Below are positions 28,788 through 56,585 of a stretch of DNA of 64,000 nt, in pieces. The DNA comes from Haliotis rubra (Eukaryota). The position numbers and the translations under genes are program-made. Position 1 is the stretch's first letter, and each line of letters begins with the position of its first letter. Below the pieces are notes generated by a model. It saw nothing but the letters and a program-made list of their open reading frames with translations. It had not been told where the DNA came from and searched no databases. The stretch is taken from NCBI RefSeq assembly GCF_003918875.1, contig NW_025767024.1:3348001-3412000 (forward strand), given 5' to 3'.

Positions 28788-30257
28788 TTATACATATGTA
28801 AACAAGACACTATGTTTATTATCATTATTATGATGAAGATTGATACCATTGATAATAAGGATCATGCCCTCTTCAGAATGACTATGGGACTAAGATGACG
28901 TAATTAGATACACAAGAGTGACGTCACACGAGATTGAATGTCTGTGCTTATCGGGAAACACATTGTGATGCAGCTGTTAGTGAATGAATTACGTCTTGGG
29001 TAATTGCTTTATGACTCATCGATCGATTACCAACCATTATCCGAAATAATTATGCCCGTTGTTCTCTTGAAATGCTTTTTTACTAAAATAATCGTTTACA
29101 CATTTTGTAGAATAATTCAACAAACGCTACAACACGTGTGATTTATTTCCAAACCCAATCAAATGTCTCGTTTTAAAGTCTCTTTGGGTGAAATCTGCTT
29201 CTTTGTCATACATCATGTTGTGAACTGGATACCAAGAGAAACCTGAGTTTAAAGATTCATCCCAAATCCCCAACTCATAGAACACACACGCACATATACC
29301 CATACATGTCTATGGTAGATCGCGCCCGAGGGGCAGAGTGCTCCCCGAACCGTGAACAATCTCAACATCAAGTAAAGATGGCGTTTCTGTGTCATGTGAT
29401 ATTGTTTTATCGTCTGCTTCTCATATTACCTTGGCGCTCTATTCTTGGTCGGTGCATTCGCAGCAGGAGCTTCTGAGTATTGGTGCTTACAAATTTGGGA
29501 TACTTCCAACTGCGTGCAATGCCGGTAGGTCACGTGACGAAACGGCGTTGTCATATTCTACAGGACTACAACTTTGAAACAGTTGACATTCTATTGTACG
29601 GAAGTTAGAAAGTGAATAAATAAATTTAGCACTGGTTGTTCACAGAGGCAGGGTTGTTCCCCTCCCTCTGATCATGTTTCAGGAGTGAAACAGGCCGTTC
29701 ACGCACGCTGTCTCGAGCAGACGAGAGTTGGAGCAACAGAAGTTCGTAGCAGACGATATCGGGTCGCGTCTTTCAAGTGTGACTCAGGGAGTGCAACGCT
29801 CGTCCTTTCAAGCGAGCTGTTGTGTATTTTGTACCTGTGGCTGATTGGCCGCTCAACGCTGAAGGTGGGTCGAAACAAGCTGACCTGGATAGCGGCTTAC
29901 TCTGAGTTGTGGGAGCGATATAGTTATGAATACTTTGTGAACAGGCTGGGACGGTTATGAATGCATGCTTGTTCGCCATCTACTGTTGTTCGGCGAGGTA
30001 GGAAGGTCGCCTCACCCACCGCCTGTTTCTGAAAGGACGACACACGACAGTGTGTGAACGCAGGAAACGTTTGAGGAGTGTTTCATCGCAACAGTAGGTG
30101 TCTGTGGGTTAGATACATCGTCGGCATTTAGGAACAGGACCTGATGCGAGTCGTATGACAACTGTGTTTCTGAAGCTATCCCAAGCCAAGTTCCCATGTT
30201 TGGATATTAACTACATGTGCTAATAGAGGCTGCGTTTGTAGCAGACGACAAGGGACG

Positions 30258-30984
30258 ATGACACGGGAGGCTCCTCTCTCGTGTGTTGTTGTGATTCTCC
30301 TTTCCGTAATAGCTTGCTCGGAGGCTTTGACATTCGGTGGAGACATAACAACATATGCCAAATTTCCCAAATGGAATGCCTGCATCAACTCTTCTCTGAA
30401 ATTCGAGTTCAAGACCAGAAAGGAAGACGGCCTGTTGATGTATACAGATGATAACGGTCGTTACGACTTCTTCCAACTTGCCCTGAAAGGAGGACAGGTA
30501 AGATTATGGATGAACGTGGTTGACGAAAAGGATGGCGTGGTGCAGCTCGTGGTGGGCAAGAACCTCAACGACGGCAGGTGGCATAACGTTGAGGTGAAGA
30601 GGAACAGAATGAACACCACTCTGTTTGTGGACAGCTATCAGAGTAGCATGATGTCCTTCGGATCTGATTTCCAGTTTGGAGATCTTTACGAAAACAACTA
30701 CGTCTTCTTTGGTGGCATCCCTGAAGGATACGAGGATAATCTGAAAGGATTGGCCCTCCCATCGTCCATGTTCGAATCTCGATTCAAAGGAGAGATTCGG
30801 AATATCCTTTACTTCAACTGCACATGTATACCTGTACGTGCGGAAATGATTGACAGTACGAACGTGTCCCGGATACCCAGGGAAGCCTGCGAGAAGACCA
30901 ACAACTGTCCAAGCCACTGTGCTTGTATCAGTTTAGATGAAGGCCCCGGGTGTGAATGCTTTGAAACTCGACAATGTGCAGACC
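30258..30984 (+). CDS. NRXN: Alpha-neurexin first coding exon, copy A (signal peptide, LNS1/LamG, EGF1)
   Basis: YAKFPKWNAC..SLKFEFKT...GLLMYTDDNGRYDFF..., LNDGRWH, LALPSSMFESRFKGEIRN, CISLDEGPGCEC closely match invertebrate neurexin-1 LNS1-EGF1; phase-1 donor C|gtaagt. Confidence 0.9.
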
Positions 30985-31779
30985 GTAAGTCAATACACGT
31001 TTGTTTGTTCTAATTCATATACTCTTACTAACATATTTGGAGCTGGCCAGCCGTGATATTGCTGGAATATTGCTAAAAGCGGCGTAAAACCAGACTCATT
31101 CACTGGGACTGGTCATTTGTTATAATTTATAACTAATATTTGAAAATAGTAGAACTACGTCAGTTTTCATGTCCCTATGTTTGGGTACATTTTGGCGACC
31201 ACCCCACGTCATGCAGTTATTTTTGTAACCCTTTAATCACCCTTTCCCTTGATACATAAATGACCAGTCCATTGTGTGTGCACCTACACACATACATACC
31301 GACATTAATACCTGCGAAAATACATATGTCAAATGTTGCATGGTGTATTCGTACAGCTTACAGAAACCAATAACATCAACACAAAGGATTAACCTAAATT
31401 CATAATTTGTCCGGATAATCCTCGGTCACATATGTACAACTTGCGCAGATTTATGACACGATCCATAATAATCTTCATCCAGCAAGCTACCCCGTGCCCT
31501 CTCCAAGGCACCATGGACATGTACTCTGTTATGTTGGGTTCAAGGACTTGATACCCGCACACTTGTACTCTTCAAAAACACAAATAACATTATCCGCACA
31601 AACGTCCAACCGTTATGCACATCCTTACCCCATCAACAGATAACCCTTCTGATATCTCCAGCAGCAACACGATATAAATAATCAGAACATGTGGTTTATG
31701 TATTTGCACCAGTGCAATGCGACCAAATAACCACCTTCAAAGATGGTAGTCAATCTTCAAGCACATTCTAATGCAAGTA

Positions 31780-31780
31780 T

Positions 31781-31812
<32 letters not shown>

Positions 31813-31830
31813 ACACACACACACACCGCA
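31780..31830. repeat. (CA)n microsatellite
   Basis: Direct reading. Confidence 0.9.
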
Positions 31831-33332
31831 CACAATCATAAATGTCACACATCACAAACACACATCTTTCGCCACACATGCATTTTTGTATCACACTTCT
31901 AAATGCCATTGAAAGACACATGTACACAAATTACTGTTGAAAACTGTACCACTTATTAACACAGTAAATGATGTTCAAACACAAAACGTGAATCACCAAA
32001 ATTACAAATATTACACAAATAATTGGTTTATACAATAATAGTCTATACATGTCACCACGAGTGGTATAACGTAACCTAATATTCCTAGCACAAGGACATA
32101 TGTTCACACATACGTTGACTATTTCAAGCTTATATCAGCAGCACAGCTGGTGAGAGATAATGTTATATCGGATCATGCAGTGAATATGGTCATGCAACTC
32201 AGCAAGTACGCTCGTTCATAACAAGACAGGTTCGTGGGCAATCCGTAACAAACACTCGTAGTGGCGTGAGGTATATATATCCGGATGCAAGATAACAACA
32301 TAAGACGCTGATCTGAGCAAATCACCAGACCTACCCAGTTTTGTTACATCCTTGTGGTAGTGTAGTGTGTGTTCTTCACGTAATCTGTTCTATCTAGGGA
32401 CCGACTAATTCTTGATCTATTGGACAGATGCTCTGGTAATACGTTGTTGAAGAGAGTAGAGCTTCTGGTGGTAAAATCAGTCATTTACATTTGCAGAAAT
32501 AATTCGGATAATAATTATGTATTTGGATTTAAAGATTTCGCATTAAATTTCATTTGGACAAACTAAAATAAGGTATAGAGACAATGACTTATTTCTAAAG
32601 TTTGCATTTTAATCTCTCACGTTTAATATTACACCACTCTTTGTATGTCCGTTTAGGGTATTTCCCCTATGACCCTTTTGTAATACCTTATTACCCCATT
32701 GTAATATCATGGCGTTTATGGTCAATCTATCAACTGAGGAGCAATTGATCCATCACATCAACAAAACACGGCCATCAGTTTTCGGTCAACAGATTGTTTA
32801 CAAACTAATATTCCATTTCAACAACGACACACCTCATCAAATAGTTAAAATATGCACTGGGCTATGTCAGTTACAAGTCAAGTACAAGGCCATGTGATTG
32901 TAATTGATCGATCACGCACCTGACCTGAAACAGGACCAACACCCCATTGCCCTACCATCTGCTTCAACTCACAGGCTCCTGCATTGGGCAGGTTGGTCAA
33001 GTTGGATTTGTTTGAATAAATATTGACCCCTCCTGGCCTACTGTAACTAGAGTGCTACTTCAACATCAGATCCATCCGCCTTCAACACATCACTTATCAA
33101 TTACAGGTACACGAGTACATCCAATTGAGCAGGAGTTGTTTTGAGTCCGTGGGATGTTGTGGAATCACGTTTTATCGTAAACATCATCACAAAGTTTGTA
33201 GGTTTTGTTTGCGGGACACGTTGGGAATCATGTAAGCTGTTTTAAAATACCAGTGATCTTACATTATAATAACGATGATCCTACACTTGTGTAGAAAAGG
33301 GTGGTTAGTGCCCATCATAACAAGAATATAAC

Positions 33333-33588
33333 AAAATAAGGAAGCGAGTTTTTGTGGATGTCAACTTCTTTATTATGAGGAACACAACGTTTCAGAATAT
33401 ATGCAGACTCCTTCGTCATTCACCTGATGGATAAGGATAAGGATAAGGATAAGGATAAGGATATCCTCCGAAACGTTGTGTTTCTCATAATAAAAAACTT
33501 CCTTAAGTGGCATTCATAATAAAGAAGTTGACATTAAAAAAAACCTCGCTACCTTATGTGTATCATTTCTAAATGCCATTCAAAGACC
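33333..33588. mobile_element. Penelope-like inverted terminal remnant with degenerate hammerhead-like cores
   Basis: Inverted arms; CTGATG...CCGAAACGTT on + and TGACGAAGGAG...TTCTGAAACGTT on -; tail TTCTAAATGCCATTCAAAGA. Confidence 0.65.
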
Positions 33589-34162
33589 TAATAGAAAATA
33601 ACCCAATCAAATCCAAAGATGCTGAAATTTTGCTTTTGTTTTTATATAAAAATATCTGAACAAGATACCACCAGTCTCGAATTTAGATAAAGTTATGTAT
33701 TCACCGAGCAGACGTATACATACTGTTGTCTATAAAACATTCAACAACTTTAACAAACTCTCCAAATGCATCCATTACCTAAATATGCATGGACATTTGT
33801 ACATATGTTACACGAGTATTCACAAACATGTGATGCATGACAGACACCGTGCATGCTGTCTCTACTGATGACACATGTGTGAACGTCTTCTGTATAAATT
33901 CCAGGTTTCAGGCAAATACCCGGCTGGGATCTTGGCCGTGGGGGTAAGCAGAGCTGTGTGCTAGAACAGCTGTAGGGATGCTCAAACGTTTGTTTTGCTT
34001 AACACTATAGAAGCAAAGCATGTTTGTAGGCCGTACTTGGGTACTAAACAGTCGTTGTTTTCTTGTTTCTGTTTAGACAAGGTCGCATGGCCATGTAGTA
34101 CAATCGATGAGGCAATTGTTTACATAATCTGCATCAATGTAATGCTTGTTGCCAAAGAGGCA

Positions 34163-37100
34163 AGACATTATTTATGTTTTGAAGTTGGTACATAGTCATG
34201 TTATAGTTATATAGTTTAGATGTTTGCAGTGATCATGTCATGCACTCATCGCCACATGATACCTCATCCCGGAGCATCATACTCACAAACCATCCCACCA
34301 TCTTTGAAAAGTCAAAGCTCATGACATACAATGGAGTATGTGTACGACCTGCTTACATGCAATATTATACATTATGCCATTAACTACAATACTACCTGTA
34401 ATTTCAGTTCAAGCAAAAGGATATCTTTGCATTTTAAATGCAACCAAGCGCACGTTACATCTTGAATAAACTTAATATCATTGATACTCACCCATGTGTA
34501 CGTGTATCATGTAGACATTTATAAGCAAACATAATGGAAAATGTTTTTAAAGGGTTACAAGTTTTACCTGTTTAACTTACCATTTTTTTTTATAAACGAC
34601 CAAGGTGTACTCAGTACATGCATTTAATTGCAAATTTTATTCTTCACAAATTTGAGGAAACGAACATACAATATTTCCATAGGTTATTTAAAAAATACTT
34701 TTTGAACACCGTACTTAAAGTTAACTATAGAAATCTGAACTTTAACATTCTTTTGGAGAGCCCTTGAGTTTTTCGGTCCCATTTCAAGCTCATTTGGACG
34801 TAAATTCACACCACGAAGCAATCCAGACGGGCGTCGCCCGCTCCAGCCCGTCGCGTGGTCCACTACACAATCATTTCCCCAATTATCGTAATCATATATG
34901 AAAATCAAAACCTGGCCCTAATTGTGCCAACGAATGTTAAATTCAAATTCAAATTTAGGAAATGTTTAAAGTCTTACATGGCAAATCTGAGATATGAATT
35001 TGATGTTATTCGTGGTATTTCCAGATTGACCTGGGGCTAAGCATTTTAATGACGTCCCTGAACATTAGCTTATCAAAGGCAGCAGTCCATTGCAGTTCAT
35101 CTTTGTGTAACAAATGAGAGGATGTTTAACTTTCTGCTGCATCGTGATGACGGATATACCGGCTGTTGTTGTAACACCTGGTTTGAACTCTGCAACACGT
35201 GGTCTCACGGAGGTTCTAATCAATGCGCATAGAACAACCATAAATCATGTGACAAACACTGACTTTGTGTAATGCAATACACATGGAATGTTAGACTAAC
35301 AGCTAGTTTCTGAAATGAACATATTTTACAAAAAGAAATTTATTTAAATTAAAATAAAAGACAATAAAATGGAGACTTTTAAAATAAAATACAATACACA
35401 AAGAGACTTTCTTCATTTTCAGAAACTGTAACTATGGAAATCTAGACTTGCCAAATATTCTAGACTTGCATAGGATACATTGAATATAGTTGTTTCAGGG
35501 TCGGTATGACAAATGGAATGTATGACAACAGAGTTTTAGGCTACACGATGTTAAAGTGATTAAATAAGAAACACTCCTGACTTTCTATTTGTAAAATGCA
35601 TATTTAGACTCGCCATTTCAGTAAAGTTGATCCAAAGCCAAACAAAATTGTTTTCACAACACACATAAATGTCATGAGTGGTATCCCTGGCTTCATAAAC
35701 AAATAGCTTGACAAATAATTGAGCATGATCTGGAACATCACTGGGAAGTTCAGATAGACGTTCAGTACCTTCTGATGCCCTACTAACGGCTCAGATAGGA
35801 CAGGGTGTTTCAGTTATCGCATACATGTGGAAATTCGTTCAACGCCTTGGAGGGATCAAGTGTTTGAGATTCCGATGTAGGTTGCCCGTTTCATCTTTTT
35901 TGCATTACCGAGTGACATATATAAATATCTGGTTCAGATGTGTATACTGCTCATTTTAATAGCCAATAATGATGTTTATTGATTCCTCGGGCAAACATTT
36001 GCATTTGTTGGTGATTTGCATTAGAAGGATGTTCCGGCAGATAGGAAGTATGAGTGAGTATGGTTCAGCAATATTCCTGCTATATCATTGTGGGGTCAAC
36101 AGAAATGGGTTTTACATTTTACCCAGATATGAAGACATAAGGATAATATAATCTTTGAAAAAATTATATCAGAGAAGACTTCAATATGATAAGGGTCACA
36201 TCAATGATACTGAACACACGAATGATAAAGTTGAATAATACGCCCCAAGAAACAAGTAATTTCCGTAAACATTCACAATTATCATCTTTGTGACATAGGG
36301 AAAATGCTATCGTTGCATACTGAATGTTGTTTCAGAATATGTTGTTCCCTATCCCATGAAAAACTTCTTTTAAGGATGGAATCTACGAATGCAATGTTCT
36401 TTGCGACAAGTAATAGGTATGAAATGTGTGATTCACCAAAACGTCCCCCATCCTCAAGAAGTCATTCCAAGGTGCATTAAGCGTTTGTAATCATAAGATA
36501 AACCCAGAATAACACGACAGTGACGTTGTCATGACGACACTGCCTCGGTGCCAAGAGTTGGTAAGGTTGTATGACGATAACACCTTAGTTGATGGCATAC
36601 CGAACCCTGCCTATGCTACATACAGGTTTCTGCTACTGATAGAAACATGAGTGTTTCGCAAATGTCAACGAGGAACCTATTCCTAACGGAATATGGCACT
36701 CCGTTCCATTTGTAACGTACAGTTCGTCATTCCTCTGAGTAATACCGCATCCATTTGCGCAGATTTATTCAGTTTCAAGACCAAAGTTCGTAATCTGGAT
36801 CAGACATTATTTATGTTTTGAAGTTGGTACATAGTCATGTTATAGTTATATAGTTTAGATGTTTGCAGTGATCATGTCATGCACTCATCGCCACATGATA
36901 CCTCATCCCGGAGCATCATACTCACAAACCATCCCACCATCTTTGAAAAGTCAAAGCTCATGACATACAATGGAGTATGTGTACGACCTGCTTACATACA
37001 ATATTATACATTATGCCATTAACTACAATACTACCTGTAATTTCAGTTCAAGCAAAAGGATATCTTTGCATTTTAAATGCAACCAAGCGCACGTTACATC

Positions 37101-39475
37101 TTGAATAAACTTAATATCATTGATACTCACCCATGTGTACGTGTATCATGTAGACATTTATAAGCAAACATAATGGAAAATGTTTTTAAAGGGTTACAAG
37201 TTTTACCTGTTTAACTTACCATTTTTTTTTATAAACGACCAAGGTGTACTCAGTACATGCATTTAATTGCAAATTTTATTCTCCACAAATTTGAGGAAAC
37301 GAACATACAATATTTCCGTAGGTTATTTAAAAAATACTTTTTGAACACCGTACTTAAAGTTAACTATAGAAATCTGAACTTTAACATTCTTTTGGAGAGC
37401 CCTTGAGTTTTTCGGTCCGATTCAAGCTCATTTGGACGTAAATTCACACCACGAAGCAATCCAGACGGGCGTCGCCCGCTCCAGCCCGTCGCGTGGTCCA
37501 CTACACAATCATTTCCCCAATTATCGTAATCATATATGAAAATCAAAACCTGGCCCTAATTGTGCCAACGAATGTTAAATTCAAATTCAAATTTAGGAAA
37601 TGTTTAAAGTCTTACATGGCAAATCTGAGATATGAATTTGATGTTATTCGTGGTATTTCCAGATTGACCTGGGGCTAAGCATTTTAATGACGTCCCTGAA
37701 CATTAGCTTATCAAAGGCAGCAGTCCATTGCAGTTCATCTTTGTGTAACAAATGAGAGGATGTTTAACTTTCTGCTGCATCGTGATGACGGATATACCGG
37801 CTGTTGTTGTAACACCTGGTTTGAACTCTGCAACACGTGGTCTCACGGAGGTTCTAATCAATGGGCATAGAACAACCATAAATCATGGGACAAACACTGA
37901 CTTTGTGTAATGCAATACACATGGAATGTTAGACTAACAGCTAGTTTCTGAAATGAACATATTTTACAGAAAGAAAGTTTAAAGAAATTAAAAAAATAAA
38001 AACAATAATAAAAGGAGACTTTATGGAAATCTAAACTTGAAAATACAAATACAATACAAAAAATAAAAGGAGACTTTCTTCATTTCTTCATTTTCAGAAA
38101 CTGTAACTATGGAAATCTAGACTTGCCAAATATTCAAGACTTAAATATTCTAGGATATATTGAATATATTTGTTTCAGGGTCGGTATGACTAATGGAATG
38201 TATGACAACAGAGTTTTAGGCTACGCGATGTTAAATTGATTAAATAAGAAACAGTCCTGACTGTTTATTTGTAAATGCATATTTAGATCCGCCATTTTAG
38301 TAAAGCTTATCCAAAGCCAAACAAAATTGTTTTCACAACACACATAAATGTCATGAGTGGTATCCCTGGCTTCATAAACAAATAGCTTGACAAATAATTG
38401 AGCATGAACTGGAACATCACTTGAAAGTTCAGATAGACGTTCAGAAACTTCTGAAGCCCTACTAACGGCTCAGATAGGACAGGGTGTTTCAGTTATCGCA
38501 TACATGTGGAAATTCGTTCAACGCCTTGGAGGGATCAAGTGTTTAAGATTCCGATGTAGGTTGCCCGTTTCATATTTTGCATTACCGAGTGACATATATA
38601 AATGTCTGGTTCAGATGTGTATACAGCTCATTTTAATAGCCAATAATGATGTTTATTGATTCCTCGGGCAAACATTTGCATTTGTTGATGATTTGCATTA
38701 GAAGGATGTTCCGGCAGATAGGAAGTATGAGTGAGTATGGTTCAGCAATATTCCTGCTATATCATTGTGGGGTCAACAGAAATGGGTTTACATTTTACCC
38801 AGATATGAAGACATAAGGATAATATAATCTTTGAAAAAATGATATCAGAGAAGACTTCAATATGATAAGGGTCACATCAATGATACTGAACACTTGTTTA
38901 AAAGTTGAATAATACGCCTTAAGAAACAAGTAATTTCCGTAAACATTCACAATTATCATCTTTGTGACATAGGGAAAATGCTATCGTTGCATACTGAATG
39001 TTGTTTCAGAATATGTTGTTCCCTATCCCATGAAAAACTTCTTTTAAGGATGGAATCTACGAATGCAATGTTCTTTGCGACAAGTAATAGGTATGAAATG
39101 TGTGATTCACCAAAACGTCCCCCATCCTCAAGAAGTCATTCCAAGGTGCATTAAGCGTTTGTAATCATAAGATAAACCCAGAATAACACGACAGTGACGT
39201 TGTCATGACGACACTGCCTCGGTGCCAAGAGTTGGTAAGGTTGTATGACGATAACACCTTAGTTGATGGCATACCGAACCCTGCCTATGCTACATACAGG
39301 TTTCTGCTACTGATAGAAACATGAGTGTTTCGCAAATGTCAACGAGGAACCTATTCCTAACGGAATATGGCACTCCGTTCCATTTGTAACGTACAGTTCG
39401 TCATTCCTCTGAGTAATACCGCATCCATTGCGCAGATTTATTCAGTTTCAAGACCAAAGTTCGTAAACTGGATCA
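34163..39475. repeat. Tandem segmental duplication, two ~2.64-kb units (34163-36802, 36802-39475)
   Basis: Near-identical sequence at offset ~2639; identical ORFs at 34855 and 37493. Confidence 0.95.
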
Positions 39476-40957
39476 CCATATTTGATCCGATTACGATCGT
39501 CGAAGTTCTTGGATTTCACATGTGTGTAGTAAATGTCTGTGTCGTTGCTGACGACGTTTGTTAAATGATGCATGAAGGTGTGTGGTTGTCTGGACACAAC
39601 ATAGTTGGTCTCGGACAACGAATACATCAATCATCGTCACACTGGGCTTAATGGAACAGGAAGCGGGACAACGGTAGTGAATGTCATATTTGACGTTAAT
39701 ACCCATTTGACAGTCTTGACCGCTGGTCAGAAATAGCATTGTCAAAGGAACTGTGTCAAAATGAAGTCTGTATGTTTGAAACCTACAATGATGAAATAAG
39801 TTGTGATAAGTAAGAATTGATTTAGTGGTCATAAATAAACACTGGACACACACGGACAGACACACAGACAGACAGACAGCCACACACACACACACACACA
39901 CATTCACCCACACAAACACATGTTACACAGCACCACGTACACACACAATCAAATTGATAATGTACATGTTACACAGCACCACGTACAATTTCATTTAATA
40001 AAATTAGATAAATATATCCTCCCATATATCATGATGTATCATGTCATAAGGTAATGGTGATATGTAACACATTTACACGGTTTTAATGGGAAATTTGATA
40101 CCATTTTCCACCGCCTTGCAATAACAAGTCTGAGTGACTGGTATATAGCTTAACTGTAAACGTTCTTATGTGCATATGTTGTGAGGCGTATCCTAGGACG
40201 CGAATGTCTATCTCGAGATGCAGTTTGTGTCGGAGTAACCAGGTGTTGCAGTCCTGTATTACTGCATTCCTGCATCGTGAAGACGTGTATCCCCATACTA
40301 TCTAGGAATACCTAGCCTTGCTATGACTTGCCGCTGGATGGCGAATGGGGAGGAGGTGTATGTGGGGGAGAGACATAGCATGGGTTAATGAGAATAACGG
40401 TCTCGAAGACTCACAGAACCACAATCTAAACATGCACATAGAACATCACACCACAACATGCACGAGTTGTTTCACTTTTTCCACCCAAGGCATATGGCTT
40501 CAGTGAGTAAGGGTTATTTTGGTTTTATTGAAATGACAGTGCTAATTATAGGAACACATGACAACTGAACGACTTTTCGTATGGCGTCGGTTATATGAGC
40601 ATCGCCGTCTTCAAATGCCCAATTCATGTCCACAATCTTGTTAACAAAGAGGTTCTGAAACCAAGACTGGTAGCCATGGAACACGAACATTCATAGTGAT
40701 GATTGGCAACGTGAACCTGAAGTGCTGAAGTAATGATAGTCCATTATAGAGTTGGAGGGTTCATATCGCCACGGGTGTCCAATATTTAGCATTGTTTTAT
40801 GGGATCATAAACACTCAATTGCCTCTGATCAATTACTATTACTTTTATAACACATATCGGACTCTGACATGTTTTCGTTTGATGTTGTTCATAAATGAAA
40901 CTCGAACATGTAACTAATCCAAGCTTATGAATACATTAACAAATTAGACAAAAGTCC

Positions 40958-41070
40958 TATATACGACATGTCGTAATATTATCAAAAGTGAATCGTAACG
41001 TGTTTTATATACTTGTTTTATATACGACATGTCGTAATATTATCAAAAGTGAATCGTAACGTGTTATATA
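40958..41070. repeat. 60-bp tandem duplication
   Basis: TATATACGACATGTCGTAATATTATCAAAAGTGAATCGTAACGTGTT occurs twice. Confidence 0.9.
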
Positions 41071-41571
41071 TTCTTGTGTCTACTAGGCTAGAGGGTGTCT
41101 TCTTACAGTGTAAGTATTAACTACCATCAAACACAAAACAACTGTAAGTTAGTTAAGGATGGGGAGCTATAACGACATTCCTGACCCATCCCAGGAACAT
41201 CGCTGGGCGACAGATCCCAGTCAAACGTGCTGAGCAAGATACAAACAGGTTCTGATGTTGCTTCACAAGAAACTGGGGATAACCTCTGAACCGTAACATT
41301 ACAACATTTGGGTTCAGCGTACCTTCTGAAGTATAACACTCCTCACAGACAGAACACACCTGGTCTTTTAGTGATTAATTAATTAGGTTTATCAATACCT
41401 GTGTAGATTAGCAATATGTACGTCGAGGAAAGTCAAGGCCAATGTAAGGGTTTACACTTTACCTAATACTTAGATATGTTTAATACTGGTCATAAACTGT
41501 TGCGACTAAGCTGTTGAATATTGTCTTGGGTTGTAGGTAGCACGAATGTCTCTTTGAACTTCAGACACTGA

Positions 41572-41720
41572 CTGAGTTTGGTTTTACGCCGCTTTTAGCA
41601 ATATTCCAGCACCATCACGGCGGGGACACCAGAAATGGGCTTCACACATAGTACCCATGCGGGATTCGAACCCGGGTCTTCGGCGTGACGAGCCAACGCT
41701 TTAACCACTAGGCTACCCCA
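41572..41720 (-). mobile_element. SINE family A (young)
   Basis: 15-bp TSD AACTTCAGACACTGA. Confidence 0.9.
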
Positions 41721-42661
41721 AACTTCAGACACTGAACTAAGTTGAAACGTATCGTTGTACCTTATGTGTTTCTCTCCTTCAAAATATGTGTCTATGGGTG
41801 GGCAAATAATAAGAATAGCTGACCTATTGCGTTTATAAAACGTAAGACTAACCTAATTCAGCTGTACAGGTTCTGGCTGATGTTTATGAAGGATAGTTAT
41901 GCTTCCCATCAAGATAGCCACGGGCGTTTTGTAGACAGTATCGTACAATCTCCCGCCCCCGTATGTCTGACGCAACAGATTGATACGTCTGATTTCTATT
42001 ATGTGTGCTTATGTCTGGCTAGAGCTACAGATGTTTCAACCCCCTGTGAATCAGCTTCTCGTGCAATATTACGCGTCAGCATGTGCGCATTCCTGCAACA
42101 AACCTGAAGACGCTGAAGCCGTGTATCTTGAACGGTGTTTATTTTTTCTCGTATGTGCATCTTCAAACACATCCTTACATCCTCGTTTTCGCCTTTTACA
42201 GGGATGAATTAATTGCGGTCTAAGACTTACTAAGAACGTGAGTGACCTCTTGTCTTAATGTTGACCTCGTTATGTGGAAATTAAGGTAATGAGAAATTAG
42301 TTTAAGAGTTAATTATGATAACTAAGTTAATTAACTTTAATTGGAAAGGCGCCTCGCGATAAGACAGTCATGTAGATGGTTGGATACTGCATCTAACAAG
42401 AATAAATAATTTCAGGATATTTCTCTCCCGGCTGGAATCCAGTATGTTTGCCCATTCTCAGCTCCCTGGGAAATATGCAAGTACAACATGAGAAGTATGT
42501 AAGTGGGATATTACGAACACTCTCCTATATAGGGTTCCTTTTTACCATAAGACTTTTTTAACAAAAACATGAAGTGAATTGATTTATTGTCATTTCTCCC
42601 TCTTGAAGAAATCATAGTGCCAACCTACAACAAAATATGCCCTATGCCCATCTTGTCACAG

Positions 42662-42688
42662 CAGAGACCATAGATTATATGGTCTCTG
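42662..42688. mobile_element. 27-bp palindromic micro-insertion with 7-bp TSD
   Basis: CAGAGACCATA-GATTA-TATGGTCTCTG flanked by GTCACAG on both sides. Confidence 0.6.
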
Positions 42689-43161
42689 GTCACAGATTCT
42701 TGCTATACGACATATCTACTCCAAAGTGTGAAATGGGGAAATCGCGCATGCTTCGAACTAACACGAAGACGCTGTTATCACTAATGAGAAACATATATGT
42801 GTTTGCTTAGCAGCCAGAATAAGACTAAACTTGCACTTTTCACGTTTCAAATTTTGAAGCTGTCTAAAGGGACGTAACTCGGTGTCAACGGAAGAACTTG
42901 CACGAACAGGTGAAGACAAAAATCTGAACCTCACGGTATTGGGAAACAGATGCTGTCAGTTTATCATGGAGGTCATCCAGGGGAAATACTTTCTCCATCT
43001 GAGTAGCGATCTAAACTAAAAGATGAGCCCTGTCTAGATCACTGGTTTCCGCACACCATGCACCTAATTACAATTTCATGCCATTTCGCCAGAAACTACA
43101 AAAACGTATGGTTCACATTTTTTGCACATAGCCCACGACAAGCGTTCTGCATTGCTTCTCT

Positions 43162-43327
43162 TATATACTCATGGAAACGAATAAGGGAATACATGAAAGT
43201 ACAAGTGTTCCTTTATTTATTTTCAGAATTTCACCCAAAGTGCAATACAAAGCTTGTGAAGAAACCTGGAAAAAATAAAGGAGCACTGGTACTTTCATAT
43301 GTTCCCTTATTCGTTTCCATGAGTATA
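43162..43327. mobile_element. Tc1/mariner-type palindromic MITE
   Basis: ~70-bp TIRs TATACTCATGGAAACGAATAAGGGAA, TA flanks. Confidence 0.8.
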
Positions 43328-44333
43328 TTAAACTACGATGAACATGTATTGGCCAAATTGCCAAAATGAAACGTTTTTGACATTAATTGTATATTAGAAC
43401 TGGTTCTTCTGAAGCGTGCATTTTATGTCATTGACAAGTATATGCATTGTATATTTTGATAACGTTGCATTAGTCAGTCTCAAACGTAATTATATTCGGA
43501 TGCCCTTAAGCATAACAGCTCATGTATATTTCACACCTCGTTAATAATATAAGCAACCTTTGAATTGTCAGATTTGTTCCTCAGTACAGGAAATGTCAGA
43601 GTTGAGCCCCTCTTTTAGTCCAACGGAGAGTGCAGACTCGCCGCCATCTTTACCGGAAGTGCCAGTGCCCTCTGTCACATGAGGGCGCAGAGTGGTCACG
43701 TGACATTTTACTCTCTGAAAGCAGAAATATCGAGCCAACTGTTATGGTGGACTTTCGAAAATGGTTACATCTGATAGTTTCTCAGGCAATAAATATGCCA
43801 TATACATAGATAGACAGGTGTCGGTACAGTGTACTGTAATCACAACATCAGTTACTCGGCCAGCGGTTGTTTGTGCCGAGTTCCACAATGTAAGGCTTAG
43901 CCATCGACAGTAGGATTACCAGGATACGTTCTGAAAATGATCCTGTGCAGGTCACCATTCTCTCAAAGAATTTCCTGAATCTTTTACATAGACGGGACTA
44001 TTCCATCAGCGTCGGACAGAATGTGTTTTTAAGAGAAGAGAAATGCATGTAAAGTGTAAAAAGGATTGATCTGACAATGTGCCAATCTGGTTATGTCTTA
44101 ACGATGATAGATGCGGATTTAGCCTTGTTCCAAGGCTGTAGTGATAGCTAAGCCCATGAATGTATAGTAATTCTGTCTTTTAAAGAGGCAAGTCTAGATA
44201 AATGGACAATACAATCTAAGGACGCCAGGGACAACATATTAATTATATTTTTATAGTTTAGAAATTGTCATTGAATTGTATATTGTAATCTTAAATACTC
44301 GTGCAAGTTTTATGCGGATTGAGCTGGCCAATA

Positions 44334-44526
44334 TAGTCTATCTCACAGTCCCCGAACCACATTATTTTCCCTACTGCCTAGCCCTCCCTGCAATGCTAAA
44401 GCCCTAAATGAAGCAAGTCTAGATTTCCCCAGAATCTCCCAGCTCACTGGGGCTCCTTTTCAATTTAAATGGGTTTATTTGTTACTATCTAAACAATATT
44501 ATATTCAGGGACTAAGCGTTAGTCTA
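44334..44526 (+). mobile_element. Academ(H)-like MITE
   Basis: TAG...CTA ends; 9-bp TSD TGGCCAATA/TGGGCACTA. Confidence 0.75.
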
Positions 44527-45125
44527 TGGGCACTATTGTTCATATTGGTTGTAAGTGTTTCGTGTGGGTTGTCTCTGTCTCCAGATATATTGAAACGCTC
44601 TTGGCAAATGTGAAAAGGTTGGAGATGAGGGCCATGAGGCATTTGGTCCCAGAACCAGTTAGTAAGCGTGTGTCAACATGGTTACCAATACAAGCTGAGA
44701 ACATACTCAAGCGTGAAACCCGAGACCCTACTGATAATTATGTTTTCTTTGTACTGCTAATCGCTTTCCCCTTCCCCATTGTGACGTCAAGCACCAAACG
44801 TGCCTTTCGAGTCTTCAGCTGCATTTCCGTAATGACTTCCATGACGTTTTCTCACATTCGTAACCTTCACATTAGGGTCAGAGTCGGGGTCAACATAAGT
44901 GAATGGCAAGGTCACAAAACACTGAATGTCGACAACGAAAGCCATGTTAAAAGTGTTTTGATCGTTAAGATATGTGTATCCACTCTTGTGTTGACTCTGA
45001 TTTCGTTGACATTTGAATTCTCGACTTGAGAGATTTGTTTGCGGACCAGACACTATGATTCAGTGAGTCACGTCAGATAACACGGGCTCATCCCTAATCG
45101 GCACAGGTGTCAGCGCTCCTGATAT

Positions 45126-45320
45126 GCCGTGAAGATCCGGGTTGGAATTGGTCTTCACCAACCCATGCTTCTTGTAAGATGGGACTAACGATACCGGCTA
45201 ACTGATTTGCTTGATGCATCGTTGTACCCCAACTGCATAAACAGATGTTCAGGATGTCAATCACTTACTTGTCTGGCCCGAAGTCAATGTACAGACCGAC
45301 GTCATATGGCTAGAATATTG
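45126..45320 (+). mobile_element. SINE-like family C (diverged)
   Basis: CCGTGAAGATCCGGGTTGGAATTGGTCTTCACCAACCCATGC start. Confidence 0.75.
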
Positions 45321-47345
45321 ACAATATGGGTTCTGTGAATATTGCACGACACGTTATTGGTTGGTTATTAGGTTTGTAAGTACTGGAAGTAAACATAATA
45401 ATATCCACATCTGCAAACCTTTACAAGGCTGAAATATGGGTCTACATGACCCTGTCTATCAAAGCTATTTTGCTCCATCTACCAGTTTTAAAATTCAAAT
45501 TTGTTCTTCAACTCAAAGGACCAGGTTGTATTCCCGTGTCTGCATCATATGTGAAGCCTATTTCAGCTCTTATCGCCCTGACATTGCTAATAGCGACAAC
45601 AAACATTGCGTTCTTACTTAAATCCAGATAATGGTATTATAAGATCTACCTGAGTGTTGTTCTTTGAATATATTCATTATTCCTGAAACATAATATGGGA
45701 CTGTGGATTACCATGAAGCCCTGGGTGAAGGAGTATCGCCATGCACTGTAAAGGTGAACGAGAAGGTTGAAGCTGCACCACAGCACAATCACAGTGGGCA
45801 CAAAGATGAGATCTAATACCCTCACAAAGTGCGGCCAACACAAGATGGCTTTCACCTGCTTCTGCAAACTCTTTAGAGTTGCTCACGTTCCATGACCAAT
45901 TTATTTGATAAGATTTACGTAGCAGAATATGTGTGGCTTACTGTCTGTCGTATAAGACAATAAATCAATTCCAATACTACAATAAGCAGTGTGATGAAGG
46001 ATTACAATCACCTGGAATTAGCTTAGATCCCTTGTTCTTGAAAGACCCTTTGCACGTGTTGGTTTCTGTTAAAGGGTTAAGCATTCCAGGACCTATCGTC
46101 AATCACTTGGTTTGACAAGGTCGTTATCGAGCAATGTATCTTGTAATGCCCTTTCTTGAGATAAGAGGACTGGCTGTCAGTGACTTGGCCTGGTTACACA
46201 TGTGTATTGAACGTGAAAGCAAAGCGGGTGTTGGGGTGTGAGGTAGAGGAGGTAAAAAATGCGTGGGTTCATTCAAAATAATTAGGTCATGGATGCCTCT
46301 AAGTCAAACAGCGGGAGCGCTGACCCACATTATAACAGGTGCAAACCGGGCGTGTTCCTGTCCTTCCCATCATATACGGAGTATACCGTTACGTTTTGCA
46401 TTGCAAAGTCTGTTTGTTTTCCTGAACAAGATATACCACTTTTGACAGCATTATTGAATATTTGTCAGACAGGTCAATTACTTGGGATGTTTTGCATTGC
46501 ATTTGAGAGTGGAGTGGGGCTGAGAGTCTCCTAAATAACTGTTGAAGAGTAGACACTCGATTGTCAATAAATTACCTACCTTAGTATGAAACACTCTTAT
46601 TCCGCAAACTTCATTGAGATTAGTTTGGTAAATACAGTATGCCACTTATTACATGCACTTGGATACATGCCTAAGGACTGAATACAAACTCGTATACATG
46701 TAATTTGAAAGTTGAATATTTGGAGTTTGAATATCTGATTAAAGAAACTAAACTTCAATTGTTAGGTAGCGACACATCTTCAGAGTTGTTCAGAACAGTC
46801 AATATTGAAATCTGTGGCAAATGTGTTGACAAACAGTTTTAATATTTTAAATAGACTGAACACATGCGTTATTTTTACTAAATTTCTGGTATATTTACTA
46901 TATTTTCGAAGCGAAAAAGATTAATTATGAGCTAATACCGTTAAGGTGTACGACAGTGCTACGGTGCGCCTCTGCCATATAGTCAATGTACCGGTTTGTG
47001 GATTTTAACCAGTAAAACAGGACATGGACAAGATGAAACCTTCATGGACAAGAATAATGTCCTTTGATGTTGTTCTTGAGGTTCCAGACGTCCCTGCTGC
47101 CGTACAGGTGTCTTGACATTGACTGATGTAACCTTGCAATATTACAGACCAGTAGATGTAGTGATGAGGAACCTTCAAAGAGAAGGCTGGGATCTCACTT
47201 TGGGTGTGGAACAGCAGTTTCAGATGAACCGTCGTTGAGTTTCCAGGACGTTGTTGTGAAGATACTCAAACAATAGTACACCATGTCCATCGACATCGTT
47301 GTTCTCTGATTGTTTTCAGGATAACTTTGTATTAGATGTGTCAAA

Positions 47346-48096
47346 ATGAAGTTTTGGGAAGATCCAGTCGTGCTGTTTATAATAACATCTGTGTCCATAT
47401 GCCAGTGTCTCCGTTTTCAAGGCATGCATTACACATATGCTAAGTTCCCAAGATGGAACACTTGTCATAACGCGTCCTTCAGTCTGGAGTTTCGAACCCG
47501 GGATCCTAACGGCCTCCTCATGTACACCGACGACACGGGGATGTACGGCTTCCTCCAGCTCTCCATCGTCAACAGTCAGATGAGGTTGTGGATGAACGTC
47601 CCTGATGAAGAAGAGGGACTAATTTCTCTGACTTCCGGTACCAACCTCAGTGATGGCCAGTGGCATCAGGTGGAGCTGAAGAGGGAACTGATGAACATTA
47701 CGGTAATCCTGGACGAGGATCAGTCCAGTATGATCTCGATACAAGGAAAACCAAATTTCTTTGGTGGAAAAAACAACAGCTTCCTGTACCTTGGAGGCGT
47801 CCCGTTCAGGTACACGGAGAATCTTAAGGGTCTGCCAGTTTCTTCTTTCATGTTCACTGTTCCCTTCAGTGGTGATTTGAGGAACATCTTCTACTACAAC
47901 TGTTCCTGTGTACCCTTCAGACCCCCCATGTTATTGTCCCGGGGGGTCCAGGCCGTGCCCAGGGAGGCGTGCGAGGCGCTGGTTGGAAATAGTACGTTAT
48001 GTCCCGAAGAATGTGTGTGCATCAGTTTAGATGACACCTATGAATGCGGGATGTGTAGCAACTACACCGACTGTGGCTACGAAGACGTCGTCGACG
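47346..48096 (+). CDS. NRXN: Alpha-neurexin-type first coding exon, copy B (signal peptide, LNS1/LamG, EGF1)
   Basis: Intact paralogue of copy A (YAKFPRWNTC, GLLMYTDD, RLWMNV, NLKGL, RNIFYYNCSC, PREACE, CISLD); acceptor ttttcag at 47319; phase-1 donor G|gtatgt. Confidence 0.85.
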
Positions 48097-48149
48097 GTAT
48101 GTTATTTTGGCATTGATACTGATGATGGATATGGTGTTAATGTGGTGGT

Positions 48150-48196
48150 ATGATGATGGTAATGATGATGGTCATAATGGATGATGATGATGATGG

Positions 48197-48246
<50 letters not shown>
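48150..48246. repeat. (GAT)n microsatellite
   Basis: Direct reading. Confidence 0.9.
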
Positions 48247-48247
<1 letters not shown>

Positions 48248-49362
48248 GCTGCAATTACAATTCAAAACTCATGGTTATTGTTTATTTCTCTGGTCACGTA
48301 GATACATGTTCGTGGATATCACTGTGAGAATTATTCGCTTTCCATACCAGTCCATAAACTTAAGCTTCGTTTTTAAGCAATCATTACATATATATTTCCC
48401 TTTCATCGGATTAAATCTATAAATGTAGTGATTCAAACAAATGCATAGCAACAAACTGCTGGTAAATGTCGAGTTGGAGGAGGATTACATGGCGAATGAG
48501 ACCTTTACTGAACATAAAAGGACAATCCCGAGTTTAACAACGAGCTTCTACTGTCGAGTTCAGTCCTTAGAGGTCCATTCCTACGTTTCACAACTATTTT
48601 GCTACCTGTGGGCCCACTAAAGTCTATACTGTTGGATAATCGAGACTGGAACTTCTTGTTTTATATTTGCAATGCCCGTAGTCAGCCATTCCCCGGGTGT
48701 TTCAGGATTAAAATAATTTACATTCAAGTTCAACACCGTGCATTCCCCTTTGTATAAATTTAGTTCAGCGCTATTCAAGGGTTATTCAAGCACAGCGTGA
48801 CCCCAGATGAACACGCGTTTAAACATGTCTGTTGCAGTGTTGTGTCCCTAACATGCTACGACCTCTGTATACATTCTGTATACACTGTGTACAGAACCGT
48901 ATGTGTCAGCACAATACACTGCTGGTCAGGAATAACATGTTACGGCCGAATAGAAATATTGATTTTCTCGCATGGCCGACTTCCCCGTTCGATTTATACG
49001 CTTACAACAATCTGACGCAGTGTTCATTATGCGCATAGTGAAATCAGGCCGTGGACAATGAATAAAAGCGTTGCCATGGCAATCAAATAAAAATGGAATA
49101 TTGAATTAAGTGTAATCATTGTCTCAGCCAATACTTTTCCTATTCCTTTGAGGGGTGGTGAGGTGGTCTCGTGGTTAAAGCCTTCTCTCATTATAAGGCC
49201 CGGGTTCTGTTCTCCAACTACCAATATTACTGCGGAGGTGTTTCTAAACGGGTAGAAAAACAGATTCATTTTGTTTGTTAATTATATGGATAGTTTCTGA
49301 ACAAATGCATCATATGTAGAAACGATATTCATGTTTGCAATACTATGAAACTCTGTTAAAAT

Positions 49363-49525
49363 AGGGGCGGTGGGGTAGCCTAGTGGTTAAAGCGTTCGCT
49401 CGTCTCGCTGAAGGCCCGGGTTTGATTCCCACATGTGTACAATGTGTGAAGCCCATTTCTGGTGTCCCCCGCCGTGATATTGCTGGAATATTACTAAAAG
49501 GGCGTAAAACACAACTCACTCACCC
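49363..49525 (+). mobile_element. SINE family A
   Basis: TSD ACTCTGTTAAAATA. Confidence 0.9.
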
Positions 49526-51054
49526 ACTCTGTTAAAATATTCTTACCATTACTGTTGTAAAGCGAAATTTGTATACGGGCACCTGTTCGGATTAACGGGG
49601 TTAATTTGTCTAAAACAATCTAAAGAGTACGTATAAACGTCCCTCTTAGATTCCGTCTCCAATTAAGCATCAGTTCGCTTCTCCGTGTTGTGAAGAAGTA
49701 TCATGTATATCCTTTGTATTCACTATTCAAACGTTCGATAAAGATCGATGATTAATCTATATAATCTCGAGGCTGTACTTTATCACATCTTGTGTTCACA
49801 GCTGTATCAACTGTAAGCATGGTTAGGTGTTCTGTGGCGGTATTCGAACACACTTCATTCATAACCGATCGTGCGTAGCTATGTGATGGACTTAAACATA
49901 TAATCATTTAGAGTTATTGTGTAATTACTGTCTAGCCTTTTGTCGAACGGTGATGGATGCTTACAAAAGCATTATGTTGTTTTTGTATAGGAAAAATACA
50001 TAATGTCCGTATATAGTTAAATAGGAAATCCTATTTGCACTTGAAAACCCAACACTGAAGTCATATTTGTAATGTTTTGATTGGATTGTTTATACAGATT
50101 TATATGAGATGTTAATCTAGAGTTAATATTGTAGCGTTGTTTCTTCTTCACTACCTCAGATATCCATATTGTACTAATATACTATTGCGGCATAAAACAA
50201 GGCTTATTTACTCGTATTGTTCTCGCACACCATTTATCCTATCATGTAACAATTAACTAAATTTGAAAATATGAGAAAATTTATTCATTTCATTATATCA
50301 ATCATCTGTAAAATTGCAAAATGATAAATTAAATAAATGATAAATTTGAAGATTGTTAAATCAGCAACTTATTTCGATTGTCAGTTATATCGAGCCCATA
50401 GATGTAGAGGTTACCATTTATTTCTCCTTCTTTACAATTACTTAAGAATGATGTATTCGTTTCATGACATAGGAGCGGTCAGGTCTTTCAATGGGCGCCT
50501 AACCCGTTTACATACATTCGTCGCTCCTTTGTGTACACCGTGTCGAATTATTCGATAACAATTTCAATTTACATATTTCTAATAGAACCGGTGCCCTATG
50601 CAATCAATGGAATAACATTTAGGGGTGGCTGTTCAGTTCACTTCAATGCACGTCACTTTACAACGTCTTGAAGGATGGTACTTCGACATGAATTAGCTTC
50701 GACAAACATGACACTTAGAAAGAAAATCGATCCCGAAGTTATGTGCGAATAATGTCATACCTTGACGTGTGACCTACTATTGAGAGGACATTTGGGTCAA
50801 GGTCATACGTCCTCGTTATTCTGTAACCAAAAGGTCATACGTCCTCGTTATTCTGTAACCATGCGTCCCTTGATAGTGTCATGATTGCGGACATTTTAAA
50901 ATAATATTTTGTGTAGTTCCAAACCACATTCTTCTATTTAAATTGATGCAACAAACATTTCATACATGTATGTACACAGGCGTACATACATTCACACACA
51001 CACACATACATACATACACCGTGATGTTGCTGGAATATTGCTAAAAGCGGCGTA

Positions 51055-51252
51055 NNNNNNNNNNNNNNNNNNNNNNNNNNNNNNNNNNNNNNNNNNNNNN
51101 NNNNNNNNNNNNNNNNNNNNNNNNNNNNNNNNNNNNNNNNNNNNNNNNNNNNNNNNNNNNNNNNNNNNNNNNNNNNNNNNNNNNNNNNNNNNNNNNNNNN
51201 NNNNNNNNNNNNNNNNNNNNNNNNNNNNNNNNNNNNNNNNNNNNNNNNNNNN
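51055..51252. other. Assembly gap (198 N)
   Basis: Run of N. Confidence 1.
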
Positions 51253-51308
51253 ATTCAGAATATAGTCGTGGATTTATTGACAAGCATGAATCAAATTTGC
51301 CCGTACGA

Positions 51309-51933
51309 TTCCTTTCAATATGGCTATCAAACATGACAGTATCATGTCCTATCTGTTACAACAATTTTTAGAGGGTTATTGATATCCCGATACAAGCACC
51401 TCCACTTTATAGTGATATGCTCCACAGAGTAATGTCCTAAAGATCGCTGTTGTTGGTCCAAACACTGCTGAGAAGAGTGTCATTATAAGTTAAGATAATC
51501 CCCTCGACTCCTGTAGAAATTGACTGGTCAATAGGGGCTGACTTTTTGTTACCATGGGTCGTGCTGAGTGAATTCAGGTCTTGATCTGTTCTACCCCTTT
51601 CGATACTGACCTACTTCAGGTCAAATCAGGTCGATATATTTTGTTTCGATGACCTTTACATATGTGGCCGACTTACCCTTTGAACCACTGTGACAGTGAA
51701 TGGATTTGGTGATAAAGGGGTGTATTTGATTTGGGAAGAAACCCACTGTCATGCAGGACATTGGCGCATTGAGTTATGTAAATATAGAACGTCAACGTCA
51801 GGAAACAGTGTCGATTATATACTGAAACAGATTCCACCTTGCACAAACGGCAAAATAACGGGGCAATGTATGTGAATTGATCACTGAAAATCAGTGACAT
51901 CACCTGGCGTTCGCGAAAATGATAAACTAGTCT
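51309..51933 (+). repeat. Left arm of ~630-bp inverted duplication (partner 58505-59133)
   Basis: High-identity reverse complement; mirrored ORFs at 51673-51903 (-) and 58535-58819 (+). Confidence 0.9.
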
Positions 51934-52112
51934 GTCTCACAGTCCCCGAACCTCATTATTTTCACTACTGCCTAATCCTCCCTGCAATGCTAAAGCCCTA
52001 AATGAAGCAAGTCTAGATATCCTCAGGTTTTCCATCTCACTGGGGCCCGTTTACAATTTACATGGATTTATTTGTTACTATCAAAATTATATATATTCAG
52101 AGATTTAGCGTT
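51928..52112 (+). mobile_element. Academ-like MITE
   Basis: Family consensus match. Confidence 0.75.
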
Positions 52113-53524
52113 CGAGAAAATGATAAGTCGGCCCTGTCCCACTCTCATATATTGAATATATTAGTGTTTGTTGAATGATGTTACGCAGCCGTACTCCTAA
52201 GAAAACTGCAAATTGTCCAAAACGTAATGAACATGATTTTTTTGTAGAAACATAACATGTTTCCAATGTTATTAAATAACACAAAATTTGACTGGGTTAT
52301 CACACGTGTCCACCTTTATATCTGTTTTTAAAATTGGGTATAAAGTCGGTCGTGACTTGGCTGAGTACGTCATCGTAAATAGAAACAAGAAAACATGTTA
52401 AATATCATGAGAAACATCCTCTAAATTGAGTCCATTGTGCTTATACATCATAAATGTATTTACTATCAGACAGACAGGAAGGTAGAAGTTTATTCAGTAT
52501 ATTTATGTCACAGACTCATAATACACATAATATAACTGTTGAAGAAAAGGTCTTGCATGCTTTGTGTAGAAGCAACCTTTAGAAGAAGAATTACTTTTTA
52601 TAATAGATATAATACTAGTATTATTACTCTCTCTCTCTCTCTGTCTCCCCCTCTCTCTCTCTCACACACACAATATATAACAATCAAATATCAAATACAG
52701 AAATACCGAAACAGTGATCACAGGATTGTCTGGCCCCGACTTGATTATACACCGACGGTTATGTCAGGGTAGGGCGAAACAACGGGCATCACAAAACCAG
52801 GAGCATCAGACCTATCGCAGACGCTCCATGCTATGTATTCATGTATTCATGATCATGTTTCCTTCTTGTGTCAAGTCACATCTCCACCGGGCGAGAGACA
52901 TGAGGTCGCTTGCAGGCAAAGATGTTATGGTCTGCTGACATTACTCACATTATGTTTGTACAGGGATCTTTGTTGGATGTTATTGAGGCGGGGGTGGTTG
53001 AGACGTTAAACAAGGTAGAGTGGTGTTATTTGTGCTGTTCCCATAAACATCAGTAGTCCCATATGGTTCTGGATAAATGCTCACAGTACACGACTTATGA
53101 TATTTAGAGAAATATATCACTGACCATCTGAAGTAGATATATTCTGTCATATACCGTTGTATCGACGCTTTTCTCGAAGTAAAAACTTAGTCCCTGTGTT
53201 TTCCTCATGTCGTCGCTCTTTGGCGTTTGTCTCGAACCTGGGATAACTTGATGTCTTTTCATAGGTCCTTTCAACTTCGACACAATGGTGTTTGAATGTA
53301 TCGCAAAAATTGACACACAACTTATTATGGTAACATTACAGAGGCTTGGGCATCTGTTACACAAGTGTGTTATCTTAATGTATTCGTGTGGCTGGTAGAA
53401 CATACCAAGACTTCGTGTTGAATTTGAACGGCATAATGCAGTCCGGATTAACGGGGCTTTCCTGTACACCGAGTAGGAATTACCAAATTCAAATTCACAT
53501 TGGGAATAATTATAGTCAAAAAGT

Positions 53525-53645
53525 GCGCACATGCACACATACATACACACACATATACATACATACACACACGCACGCACGCACGCACGCACGCATACAC
53601 ACACACACACACACACGCACACAAAAAGAAGACAGACAGACAGAG
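53525..53645. repeat. Compound CA/CATA/CACG/CAGA microsatellite
   Basis: Direct reading. Confidence 0.9.
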
Positions 53646-55189: not shown

Positions 55190-55600
55190 GACAACACAGT
55201 GCAGTTTACGCAGAGTTCGAGGGTACCTTTACGTTGCGTATGCCTGCACAATACAACAGCGTATGTTTGCGTAGCCGCGGAACAAAACAGCGTCCATACA
55301 CTGTTAAGTAGCGTAGCCCCCGAGAGCAAAACATTGTTTAAATACGGTTACACTGTGAAGTACTGTAGAACAAAACATTGTTCCTTTATGGTTAGGCTAC
55401 CAAGTCCTGTAGAATAAAACATTGTTCATATACGGTTACGGAGCGAAGTGCTGTAGAACAAAGCATTGTCAATACTTAGTATACGGTTACGCTGCGAGGT
55501 CCCGTAGGACAAAACATTGTTCATATACGGTTACACTGCGAAGTTCTGAAGAACAAAACAATGTTCATGTACGCTTATGCTGCAAAATCCCGTATGTTTA
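55190..55600. repeat. Degenerate ~44-bp tandem repeat
   Basis: Recurring GAACAAAACATTGTTCATATACGGTTAC. Confidence 0.75.
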
Positions 55601-56454: not shown

Positions 56455-56585
56455 GGACATTATTACCCCGGATAACCCAAGCTGCGTGTGAGGCGCTAGA
56501 AGGTTAATAGTCATATGACTTATCCCACCGGGTACCCATTTTCTGCTGTGTGAAAAGAGGCAATTTTGAACAAACTCACTGCGCG
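56455..56585 (-). mobile_element. SINE family D fragment (Nin-like core)
   Basis: GGGTACCCATTTTCTGCTG.GTGAA. Confidence 0.7.

Follow-up and report, generated by a model that had tools for sequence, protein, structure and literature searches.

Variable first exons joined to a constant gene body are a well-known design, found in the clustered protocadherins, UGT1A and sDscam. Neurexins, the textbook example of synaptic molecular diversity, change their N-terminus through alpha, beta and gamma promoters that truncate the protein and do not swap paralogous LNS1-EGF1 segments, and they vary further through small spliced inserts. Here we describe a locus of the abalone Haliotis rubra at which two paralogous exons, A and B, each encoding a signal peptide, an LNS1 domain and an EGF-like module, stand in tandem ahead of a single series of downstream exons. 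The window that we analyzed is the 64,000-nt stretch C2134:3348001-3412000 (contig NW_025767024.1) of a 1.38-Gb assembly, and the remaining 190 kb of the contig was searched as well (254 kb in total). On balance, we favor the view that one abalone neurexin-like gene uses A and B as alternative 5' coding exons. If this is true, a relative of the neurexins would exchange an entire distal recognition domain through its choice of exon, which is not how diversity is otherwise known to arise in the neurexin superfamily, and such an exon-swapping relative may have evolved on two occasions, once among molluscs and once among annelids. Our literature search returned no paper on tandem LNS1-EGF1 first exons or on abalone neurexins of such a kind.

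Two paralogous cassettes and one set of downstream exons

Exons A and B lie ~17 kb apart on the same strand, within open reading frames (ORFs) at 30258..31013 and 47346..48116 (both +), the second of which stops six codons beyond the exon's donor. An initial annotation, made from the sequence of the window alone, had described two intact + strand exons, each with a signal peptide, LNS1 and EGF1, judged 40-50% identical by eye, with conserved cysteines and phase-1 donors (30984|gtaagt and 48096|gtatgt), and this description holds. The start that it gave for the locus, 29683, corresponds only to an acceptor-like motif ahead of A. Cut at their donors, A and B yield peptides of 242 and 250 residues that share 47% identity across 227 amino acids (E = 6e-80), and the nucleotide identity between the copies is 54%. 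Both match the Pfam families Laminin_G_2 (A at 6e-24, B at 8e-22) and Laminin_G_1, and phmmer searches of the PDB align both with neurexin-1-alpha (3qcw/3r05; 1e-70 for A and 1e-51 for B). The best stretch there is chain residues 1-218, corresponding to LNS1-EGF1, of which A covers residues 3-218 and B residues 1-216. Each copy has 12 cysteines, and all 10 that follow the signal peptide align between A and B. The signal peptides themselves were judged from hydrophobic N-termini, together with an N-terminal helix in the structural model of B. The coding lengths of the exons (Table 1) place both donors in phase 1.

The exon that would follow either copy lies outside the window. Using full-length relatives from an exhaustive profile search as tblastn queries, we located the first constant exon at C2134:3426645-3426860 (L002:4645-4860), 30.5 kb past B and starting at 78645 in extended coordinates, that is, window numbering carried past the window's end. 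Its acceptor, tttcag|AG, is in phase 1, as the initial annotation had anticipated, and it fits both donors: the split codon would read cAG after A and gAG after B. Homology to P0001 (CAH1790210.1), a protein of the annelid Owenia fusiformis, runs on across the junction between exon 1 and exon 2. From C2134:3426645 onward, a single collinear series of exons on the same strand occupies extended coordinates 78.6 to ~123.4 kb. By tblastn order, Laminin_G_3 repeats come first in it, and LNS/EGF modules of neurexin type and a transmembrane segment come after them. P0001, the best full-length model of this gene, has the domain order LNS1-EGF, four Laminin_G_3 repeats, many LNS domains, EGF and a transmembrane segment, and the abalone exons keep it, with exon 1 followed by exons matching the four Laminin_G_3 repeats (P0001 residues 250-1110, ~860 residues) before the LNS/EGF exons begin.

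This downstream series is the only one available to the two copies. In tblastn with the full-length relatives, no neurexin-like exon was found between A and B or after B within the window, in agreement with the initial annotation, and no second downstream exon set was found in the 254 kb of contig or genome-wide, except that of the canonical neurexin on C2168. A single downstream set, with none between the copies, means two cassettes and one constant body, with no private exon set for either cassette. Paralogs often stand in tandem, and 206 kb of contig remain past B, but the possibility that A and B are first exons of two complete genes with private downstream exons, produced by tandem gene duplication, is essentially excluded by this single set and by the fact that the one other set in the genome, on C2168, has a first exon of its own. 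The initial annotation had also suggested that more cassettes might lie downstream. No further cassette or degenerate remnant was found on the contig, even by relaxed tblastn, and the only other A/B-like copy in the genome is the canonical neurexin first exon on C2168.

In the arrangement that we favor, each transcript would carry either A or B, spliced by its phase-1 donor to the common phase-1 acceptor of exon 2. Two receptors would result, differing only in their signal peptide and membrane-distal LNS1-EGF module. The choice between cassettes could be made by a separate promoter for each exon, or by a shared leader with mutually exclusive splicing at the acceptor-like motifs ending at 29682 and 47319. 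Use of the candidate acceptor before B would make B an internal exon, reached from a leader farther upstream, and not a true first exon. The A donor joined to 47320 would read cGA TAA, an immediate stop. The intactness of both cassettes, their matching phases, the single constant set and selection on B are shown by the data; the joining of B to exon 2, and with it the mode of choice, we infer.

Table 1. Positions of the two cassettes and their associated features, in window coordinates
Feature	Coordinates	Strand	Description	Basis
Exon A, coding part	30258..30984	+	ATG, signal peptide, LNS1 (laminin-G), cysteine-rich EGF-like module; ends in phase 1; conserved, orthologous first exon	
Exon B, coding part	47346..48096	+	Own ATG, signal peptide, LNS1, EGF-like module; ends in phase 1; fast-evolving paralog of A	
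Exon A donor, gtaagt	30985..30990	+	Phase 1; 727 coding bases = 242 codons + 1	Sequence
Exon B donor, gtatgt	48097..48102	+	Phase 1; 751 coding bases = 250 codons + 1	Sequence
A-B spacer	30991..47302	+	First part of intron 1 in A-type transcripts; neither a cassette remnant nor any neurexin-like exon	tblastn with P0001, P0002 and P0004; relaxed tblastn with A and B
Post-B intron start	48103..64000	+	Beginning of the intron that separates B from the first constant exon (extended coordinate 78645, past the window's end)	tblastn, acceptor sequence
Possible 5' untranslated part of exon A	29683..30257	+	Follows acceptor-like tgtttcag at 29675-29682, which is weaker than the tract before B	Sequence only
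Pyrimidine-rich tract ending in cag, candidate splice acceptor	47303..47345	+	Last base of cag at 47319, 26 nt before the B start codon	Sequence only

Two smaller observations concern the introns around B. An ORF within the spacer, at 44526-45029, has no Pfam match. An ATG/GAT-rich microsatellite occupies window positions 48120-48255, ~25 nt past the exon B donor, and contigs from the DNA run break there.

A neurexin-like paralog and its counterpart in Owenia

The initial annotation had taken the locus for neurexin, an assignment that did not survive comparison with the rest of the genome. The Haliotis asinina neurexin 1-like isoform X5 (P0002, XP_067682450.1) maps exon by exon to C2168:668579-773151 (~105 kb) at 78-98% identity, with 94-96% for the largest exons, whereas A and B are only 41% and 34% identical to it. 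This canonical gene has a single LNS1-EGF1 first exon, the third such copy to emerge from the genome-wide searches. In our tree, the A/B gene falls in a separate lophotrochozoan clade with a Shimodaira-Hasegawa-like approximate likelihood ratio (SH-aLRT) support of 98. Because the canonical neurexin is on C2168 at such high identity, and A and B are so much less similar to it and group in a separate clade, the A/B gene is, by these comparisons, a neurexin-like paralog and not the genome's neurexin-1 ortholog. Nor does it have the canonical layout of three consecutive LNS-EGF-LNS cassettes, a transmembrane segment and a short tail.

Past the LNS exons, at extended coordinates 122520-129479 (L006-L007; C2134:3470520-3477479), further exons match the transmembrane region of P0001 and then its WD40 repeats, keeping both the strand and the order. 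A WD40 propeller on the cytoplasmic side may be part of the family, an unusual feature among relatives of neurexin; otherwise, these exons belong to a conserved neighboring gene that is fused in the Owenia model.

Public databases contain many short proteins of ~250 aa that match A. These consist of exon 1 plus read-through of its G|GTAAG donor, hence their "GK" tails. We considered and rejected the idea that such ~250-aa LNS-EGF proteins form a small secreted family, as they are exon 1 with intron read-through, a gene-calling artefact on genomic contigs. P0125 was likewise rejected as a second spliced model of the family, its architecture not being the same. Many short "laminin G" or "neurexin-like" mollusc records are orphaned first exons of a large, poorly modelled gene family. 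In the protein collections, A, B and exon 2 found no same-species match, and the exon 2 query found no match of any kind.

The closest parallel to the A/B pair that we encountered is in Owenia fusiformis (GCA_903813345.2, CAIIXF020000007.1). There, the first exon of P0001 is at L025:2536-3271 and a second LNS1-EGF exon is at L025:10001-10727, 6.7 kb away and in the same orientation; the annotated gene, which encodes 4148 residues, has this second exon within its first intron. The public model connects the upstream exon with the gene body. The pair belongs to the same family as A and B, with the same domain order and the same tandem placement of first exons, but it is found in an annelid, and its second copy is filed as a separate partial protein (P0169). 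Both Owenia exons end in phase-1 donors with G as the last exon base. The two copies are 53% identical and are sisters in the tree, and forcing B to group with either one costs 30-32 log-likelihood units (approximately unbiased test, p-AU 0.023 and 0.064). Since the Owenia copies are mutual closest relatives and their grouping with B is disfavored, the abalone and Owenia duplications were probably independent, an interpretation that is favored, not proven, by these sequence comparisons.

Selection, expression and history of exon B

The proposal of a working second cassette presumed that B is not evolving neutrally, and several lines of evidence agree with it. When A was evolved neutrally in simulation to 70% nucleotide identity, its frame remained open in 0.2% of runs; at 54%, the identity observed between the copies, this fell to 0.05%. 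B retains 47 of 61 family-conserved positions (those at least 70% conserved) against 47% identity overall, and among the positions at which it has changed are D70G, G135Q and G141F (A numbering). Its AlphaFold model is a confident beta-sandwich with a small C-terminal module (predicted local distance difference test, pLDDT, 85.9; predicted template modelling score, pTM, 0.85). Divergence between species was available from DNA run X13, which comes from a related abalone (organism D). One X13 contig spans 46811-48133 with 73 mismatches; over the 1574 nt of an intron piece (45146-46719), there are 122 mismatches together with 22 gaps. X13 contains 45% of the sampled 31-mers of exon B, giving ~2.5% divergence if changes are evenly spread, against ~8-9% in the flanks; the exon value is an indirect estimate from totals and not a per-site count. 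By this estimate, the divergence of the B exon between the two abalone species would be lower than that of its flanks by a factor of about 3-4. Taken together, the open frame, the retained residues and cysteines, the confident fold and the lower divergence of the exon relative to its introns show that purifying selection has acted on B and continues to do so.

Evidence for expression differs between the two copies. Four small RNA-like assemblies of the same species (X25-X28, organism C, 30-52 Mb, one study) contain 0.63-0.75 of the words of exon A. One would not expect such enrichment if DNA from a 1.38-Gb genome had been sequenced, so exon A is expressed, provided that these runs are RNA, as we guess. 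For exon B, eight small RNA-like runs from a related species (organism A, two studies) contain 7-9% of its words. In run X1, a 656-nt contig covers 47390-48015 (626 nt) with 50 mismatches and no gaps, at 92% identity to B, and in run X4, a 161-nt contig lies on B at 47816-47976. Both contigs are wholly within the exon and are informative neither for nor against splicing. B-type sequence is probably transcribed in this related species.

The two copies also differ in their history. Exon A has orthologs at 88% (P0151, Logan run DRR299178) and 70% identity (P0152, ENA ERZ25071447) and a similar one in Gigantopelta; against the 88% ortholog (L021, DRR299178), nonsynonymous divergence (dN) is 0.064 and synonymous divergence (dS) is 0.434. 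In the tree, B joins A, P0151, P0152 and the Gigantopelta sequence in a starred clade, on a branch of 1.55 vs 0.057 for A, and synonymous differences between A and B have reached saturation. Only a single copy, within 10 kb on either side, is present in Babylonia and in another mollusc (ENA ERZ25069865).

Several results weigh against A and B being alternative exons of one gene. All of the runs are Logan contigs, and their RNA status is only guessed. X25-X28, which are from the same species, each contain less than 5% of the words of B, and X25 has nothing on B or on its unique flanking intron. Among the runs examined, no contig or read was seen across the A-to-exon-2 or the B-to-exon-2 junction, and protein searches found no full-length abalone gene model carrying A or B. 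In sequence searches, B gave no ortholog outside abalone-like runs, its best database matches being A orthologs at 45-46%, and in a related snail (ERZ25071447 ctg83776), no B-like exon lies between 10 kb upstream and 34 kb downstream of the A ortholog. From the lack of a B ortholog, the long branch and the snail contig, we conclude that B is a lineage-restricted, fast-changing duplicate and that A is the conserved, ancestral copy. B would have been born by duplication of A in the abalone lineage or shortly before, and would have diverged quickly before reaching its present conserved state.

The same observations could be explained if B were an unused relic of exon duplication, recently silenced or never expressed in this species, with only A feeding the gene. 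Same-species RNA-like runs that contain A and not B, the very long B branch with its changes at family-conserved positions, and the failure to find a B-like exon in other species are all what a relic would leave. We nonetheless regard this as quite unlikely. A 250-codon frame that is open and has all of its cysteines after synonymous saturation is very improbable without selection, and the reduced divergence of the exon relative to its flanks between two abalones, the gap-free 626-nt stretch at 92%, and the B-like contigs in the eight small RNA-like runs of a relative all speak against decay.

A selected and transcribed B could also form a small gene of its own within intron 1 of the A transcript, one that has its own promoter, does not splice to exon 2 and encodes a short secreted LNS-EGF protein of ~256 residues (ORF 47346-48116). 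B has its own ATG and signal peptide with a stop soon after the donor, it is under selection, its X1 contig includes no junction, and public annotations often file such exons as short stand-alone proteins. However, those short proteins are the products of donor read-through described above, B keeps a good donor in the exact phase that exon 2 needs, and both Owenia copies likewise keep phase-1 donors ending in G. A nested gene therefore seems to us unlikely.

Returning to A and B as alternative exons of one gene, we tentatively place them within a wider scheme. Lophotrochozoan neurexin-like receptors with a LamG3 insert, and possibly a cytoplasmic WD40 domain, might have diversified their distal LNS1-EGF module by tandem first exons that evolved independently in abalone and Owenia. 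The conservation of B after a burst of change might then point to a switch in ligand specificity, made by promoter or splicing across cells or stages.

Neighboring sequence and comparison with known systems

The rest of the window contains several features of its own. Long ORFs of 315 aa (rich in lysine and arginine) and 437 aa lie, in this order, at 20521-23044 (+). Neither matches Pfam, and the pair may represent either a mobile element or an orphan gene. Long low-complexity open frames at 48-1307 (-) and 11407-11882 are made of short tandem units (SLTHS-like and ITLTFIH-like) and are minisatellites, not genes. The short repeat at 49363-49500, which carries a tRNA-like box (GGGTTCGATTCCCG), is very abundant; it is present in every run aligned here, with a summed contig depth in the millions in DNA runs, and is probably a tRNA-derived short interspersed nuclear element (SINE). 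A run of 198 N at 51055-51252 is an assembly gap or a masked stretch.

Among described genes, the alpha-neurexins (NRXN1-3, Drosophila Nrx-1 and H. asinina XP_067682450.1) are like A and B in the signal peptide-LNS1-EGF1 unit, which aligns end to end with residues 1-218, and the LNS2-LNS6 and EGF modules of P0002 align with the downstream exons of the A/B gene. The A/B gene differs from them in that Laminin_G_3 repeats, ~860 residues in all, separate EGF1 from the LNS modules that follow. In mutually exclusive exons of the Dscam1 type, each exon is internal and inclusion of both is non-productive; what bears on this at the A/B locus is the pair of acceptor-like motifs (ending at 29682 and 47319) and the stop that joining A to 47320 would create, and neither a leader exon nor RNA evidence was found. 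The protocadherin- or sDscam-like architecture put forward in the initial annotation is apt for tandem cassettes ahead of one constant set and goes too far in implying an array: here there are only two cassettes, 17 kb apart, and their 47% identity makes them far more different from each other than most protocadherin neighbors are. What A and B do share with the clustered protocadherins, UGT1A and chelicerate sDscam is a tandem arrangement in which every paralogous 5' exon encodes its own start codon and signal peptide along with an entire extracellular domain, together with a single donor phase and one constant exon set.

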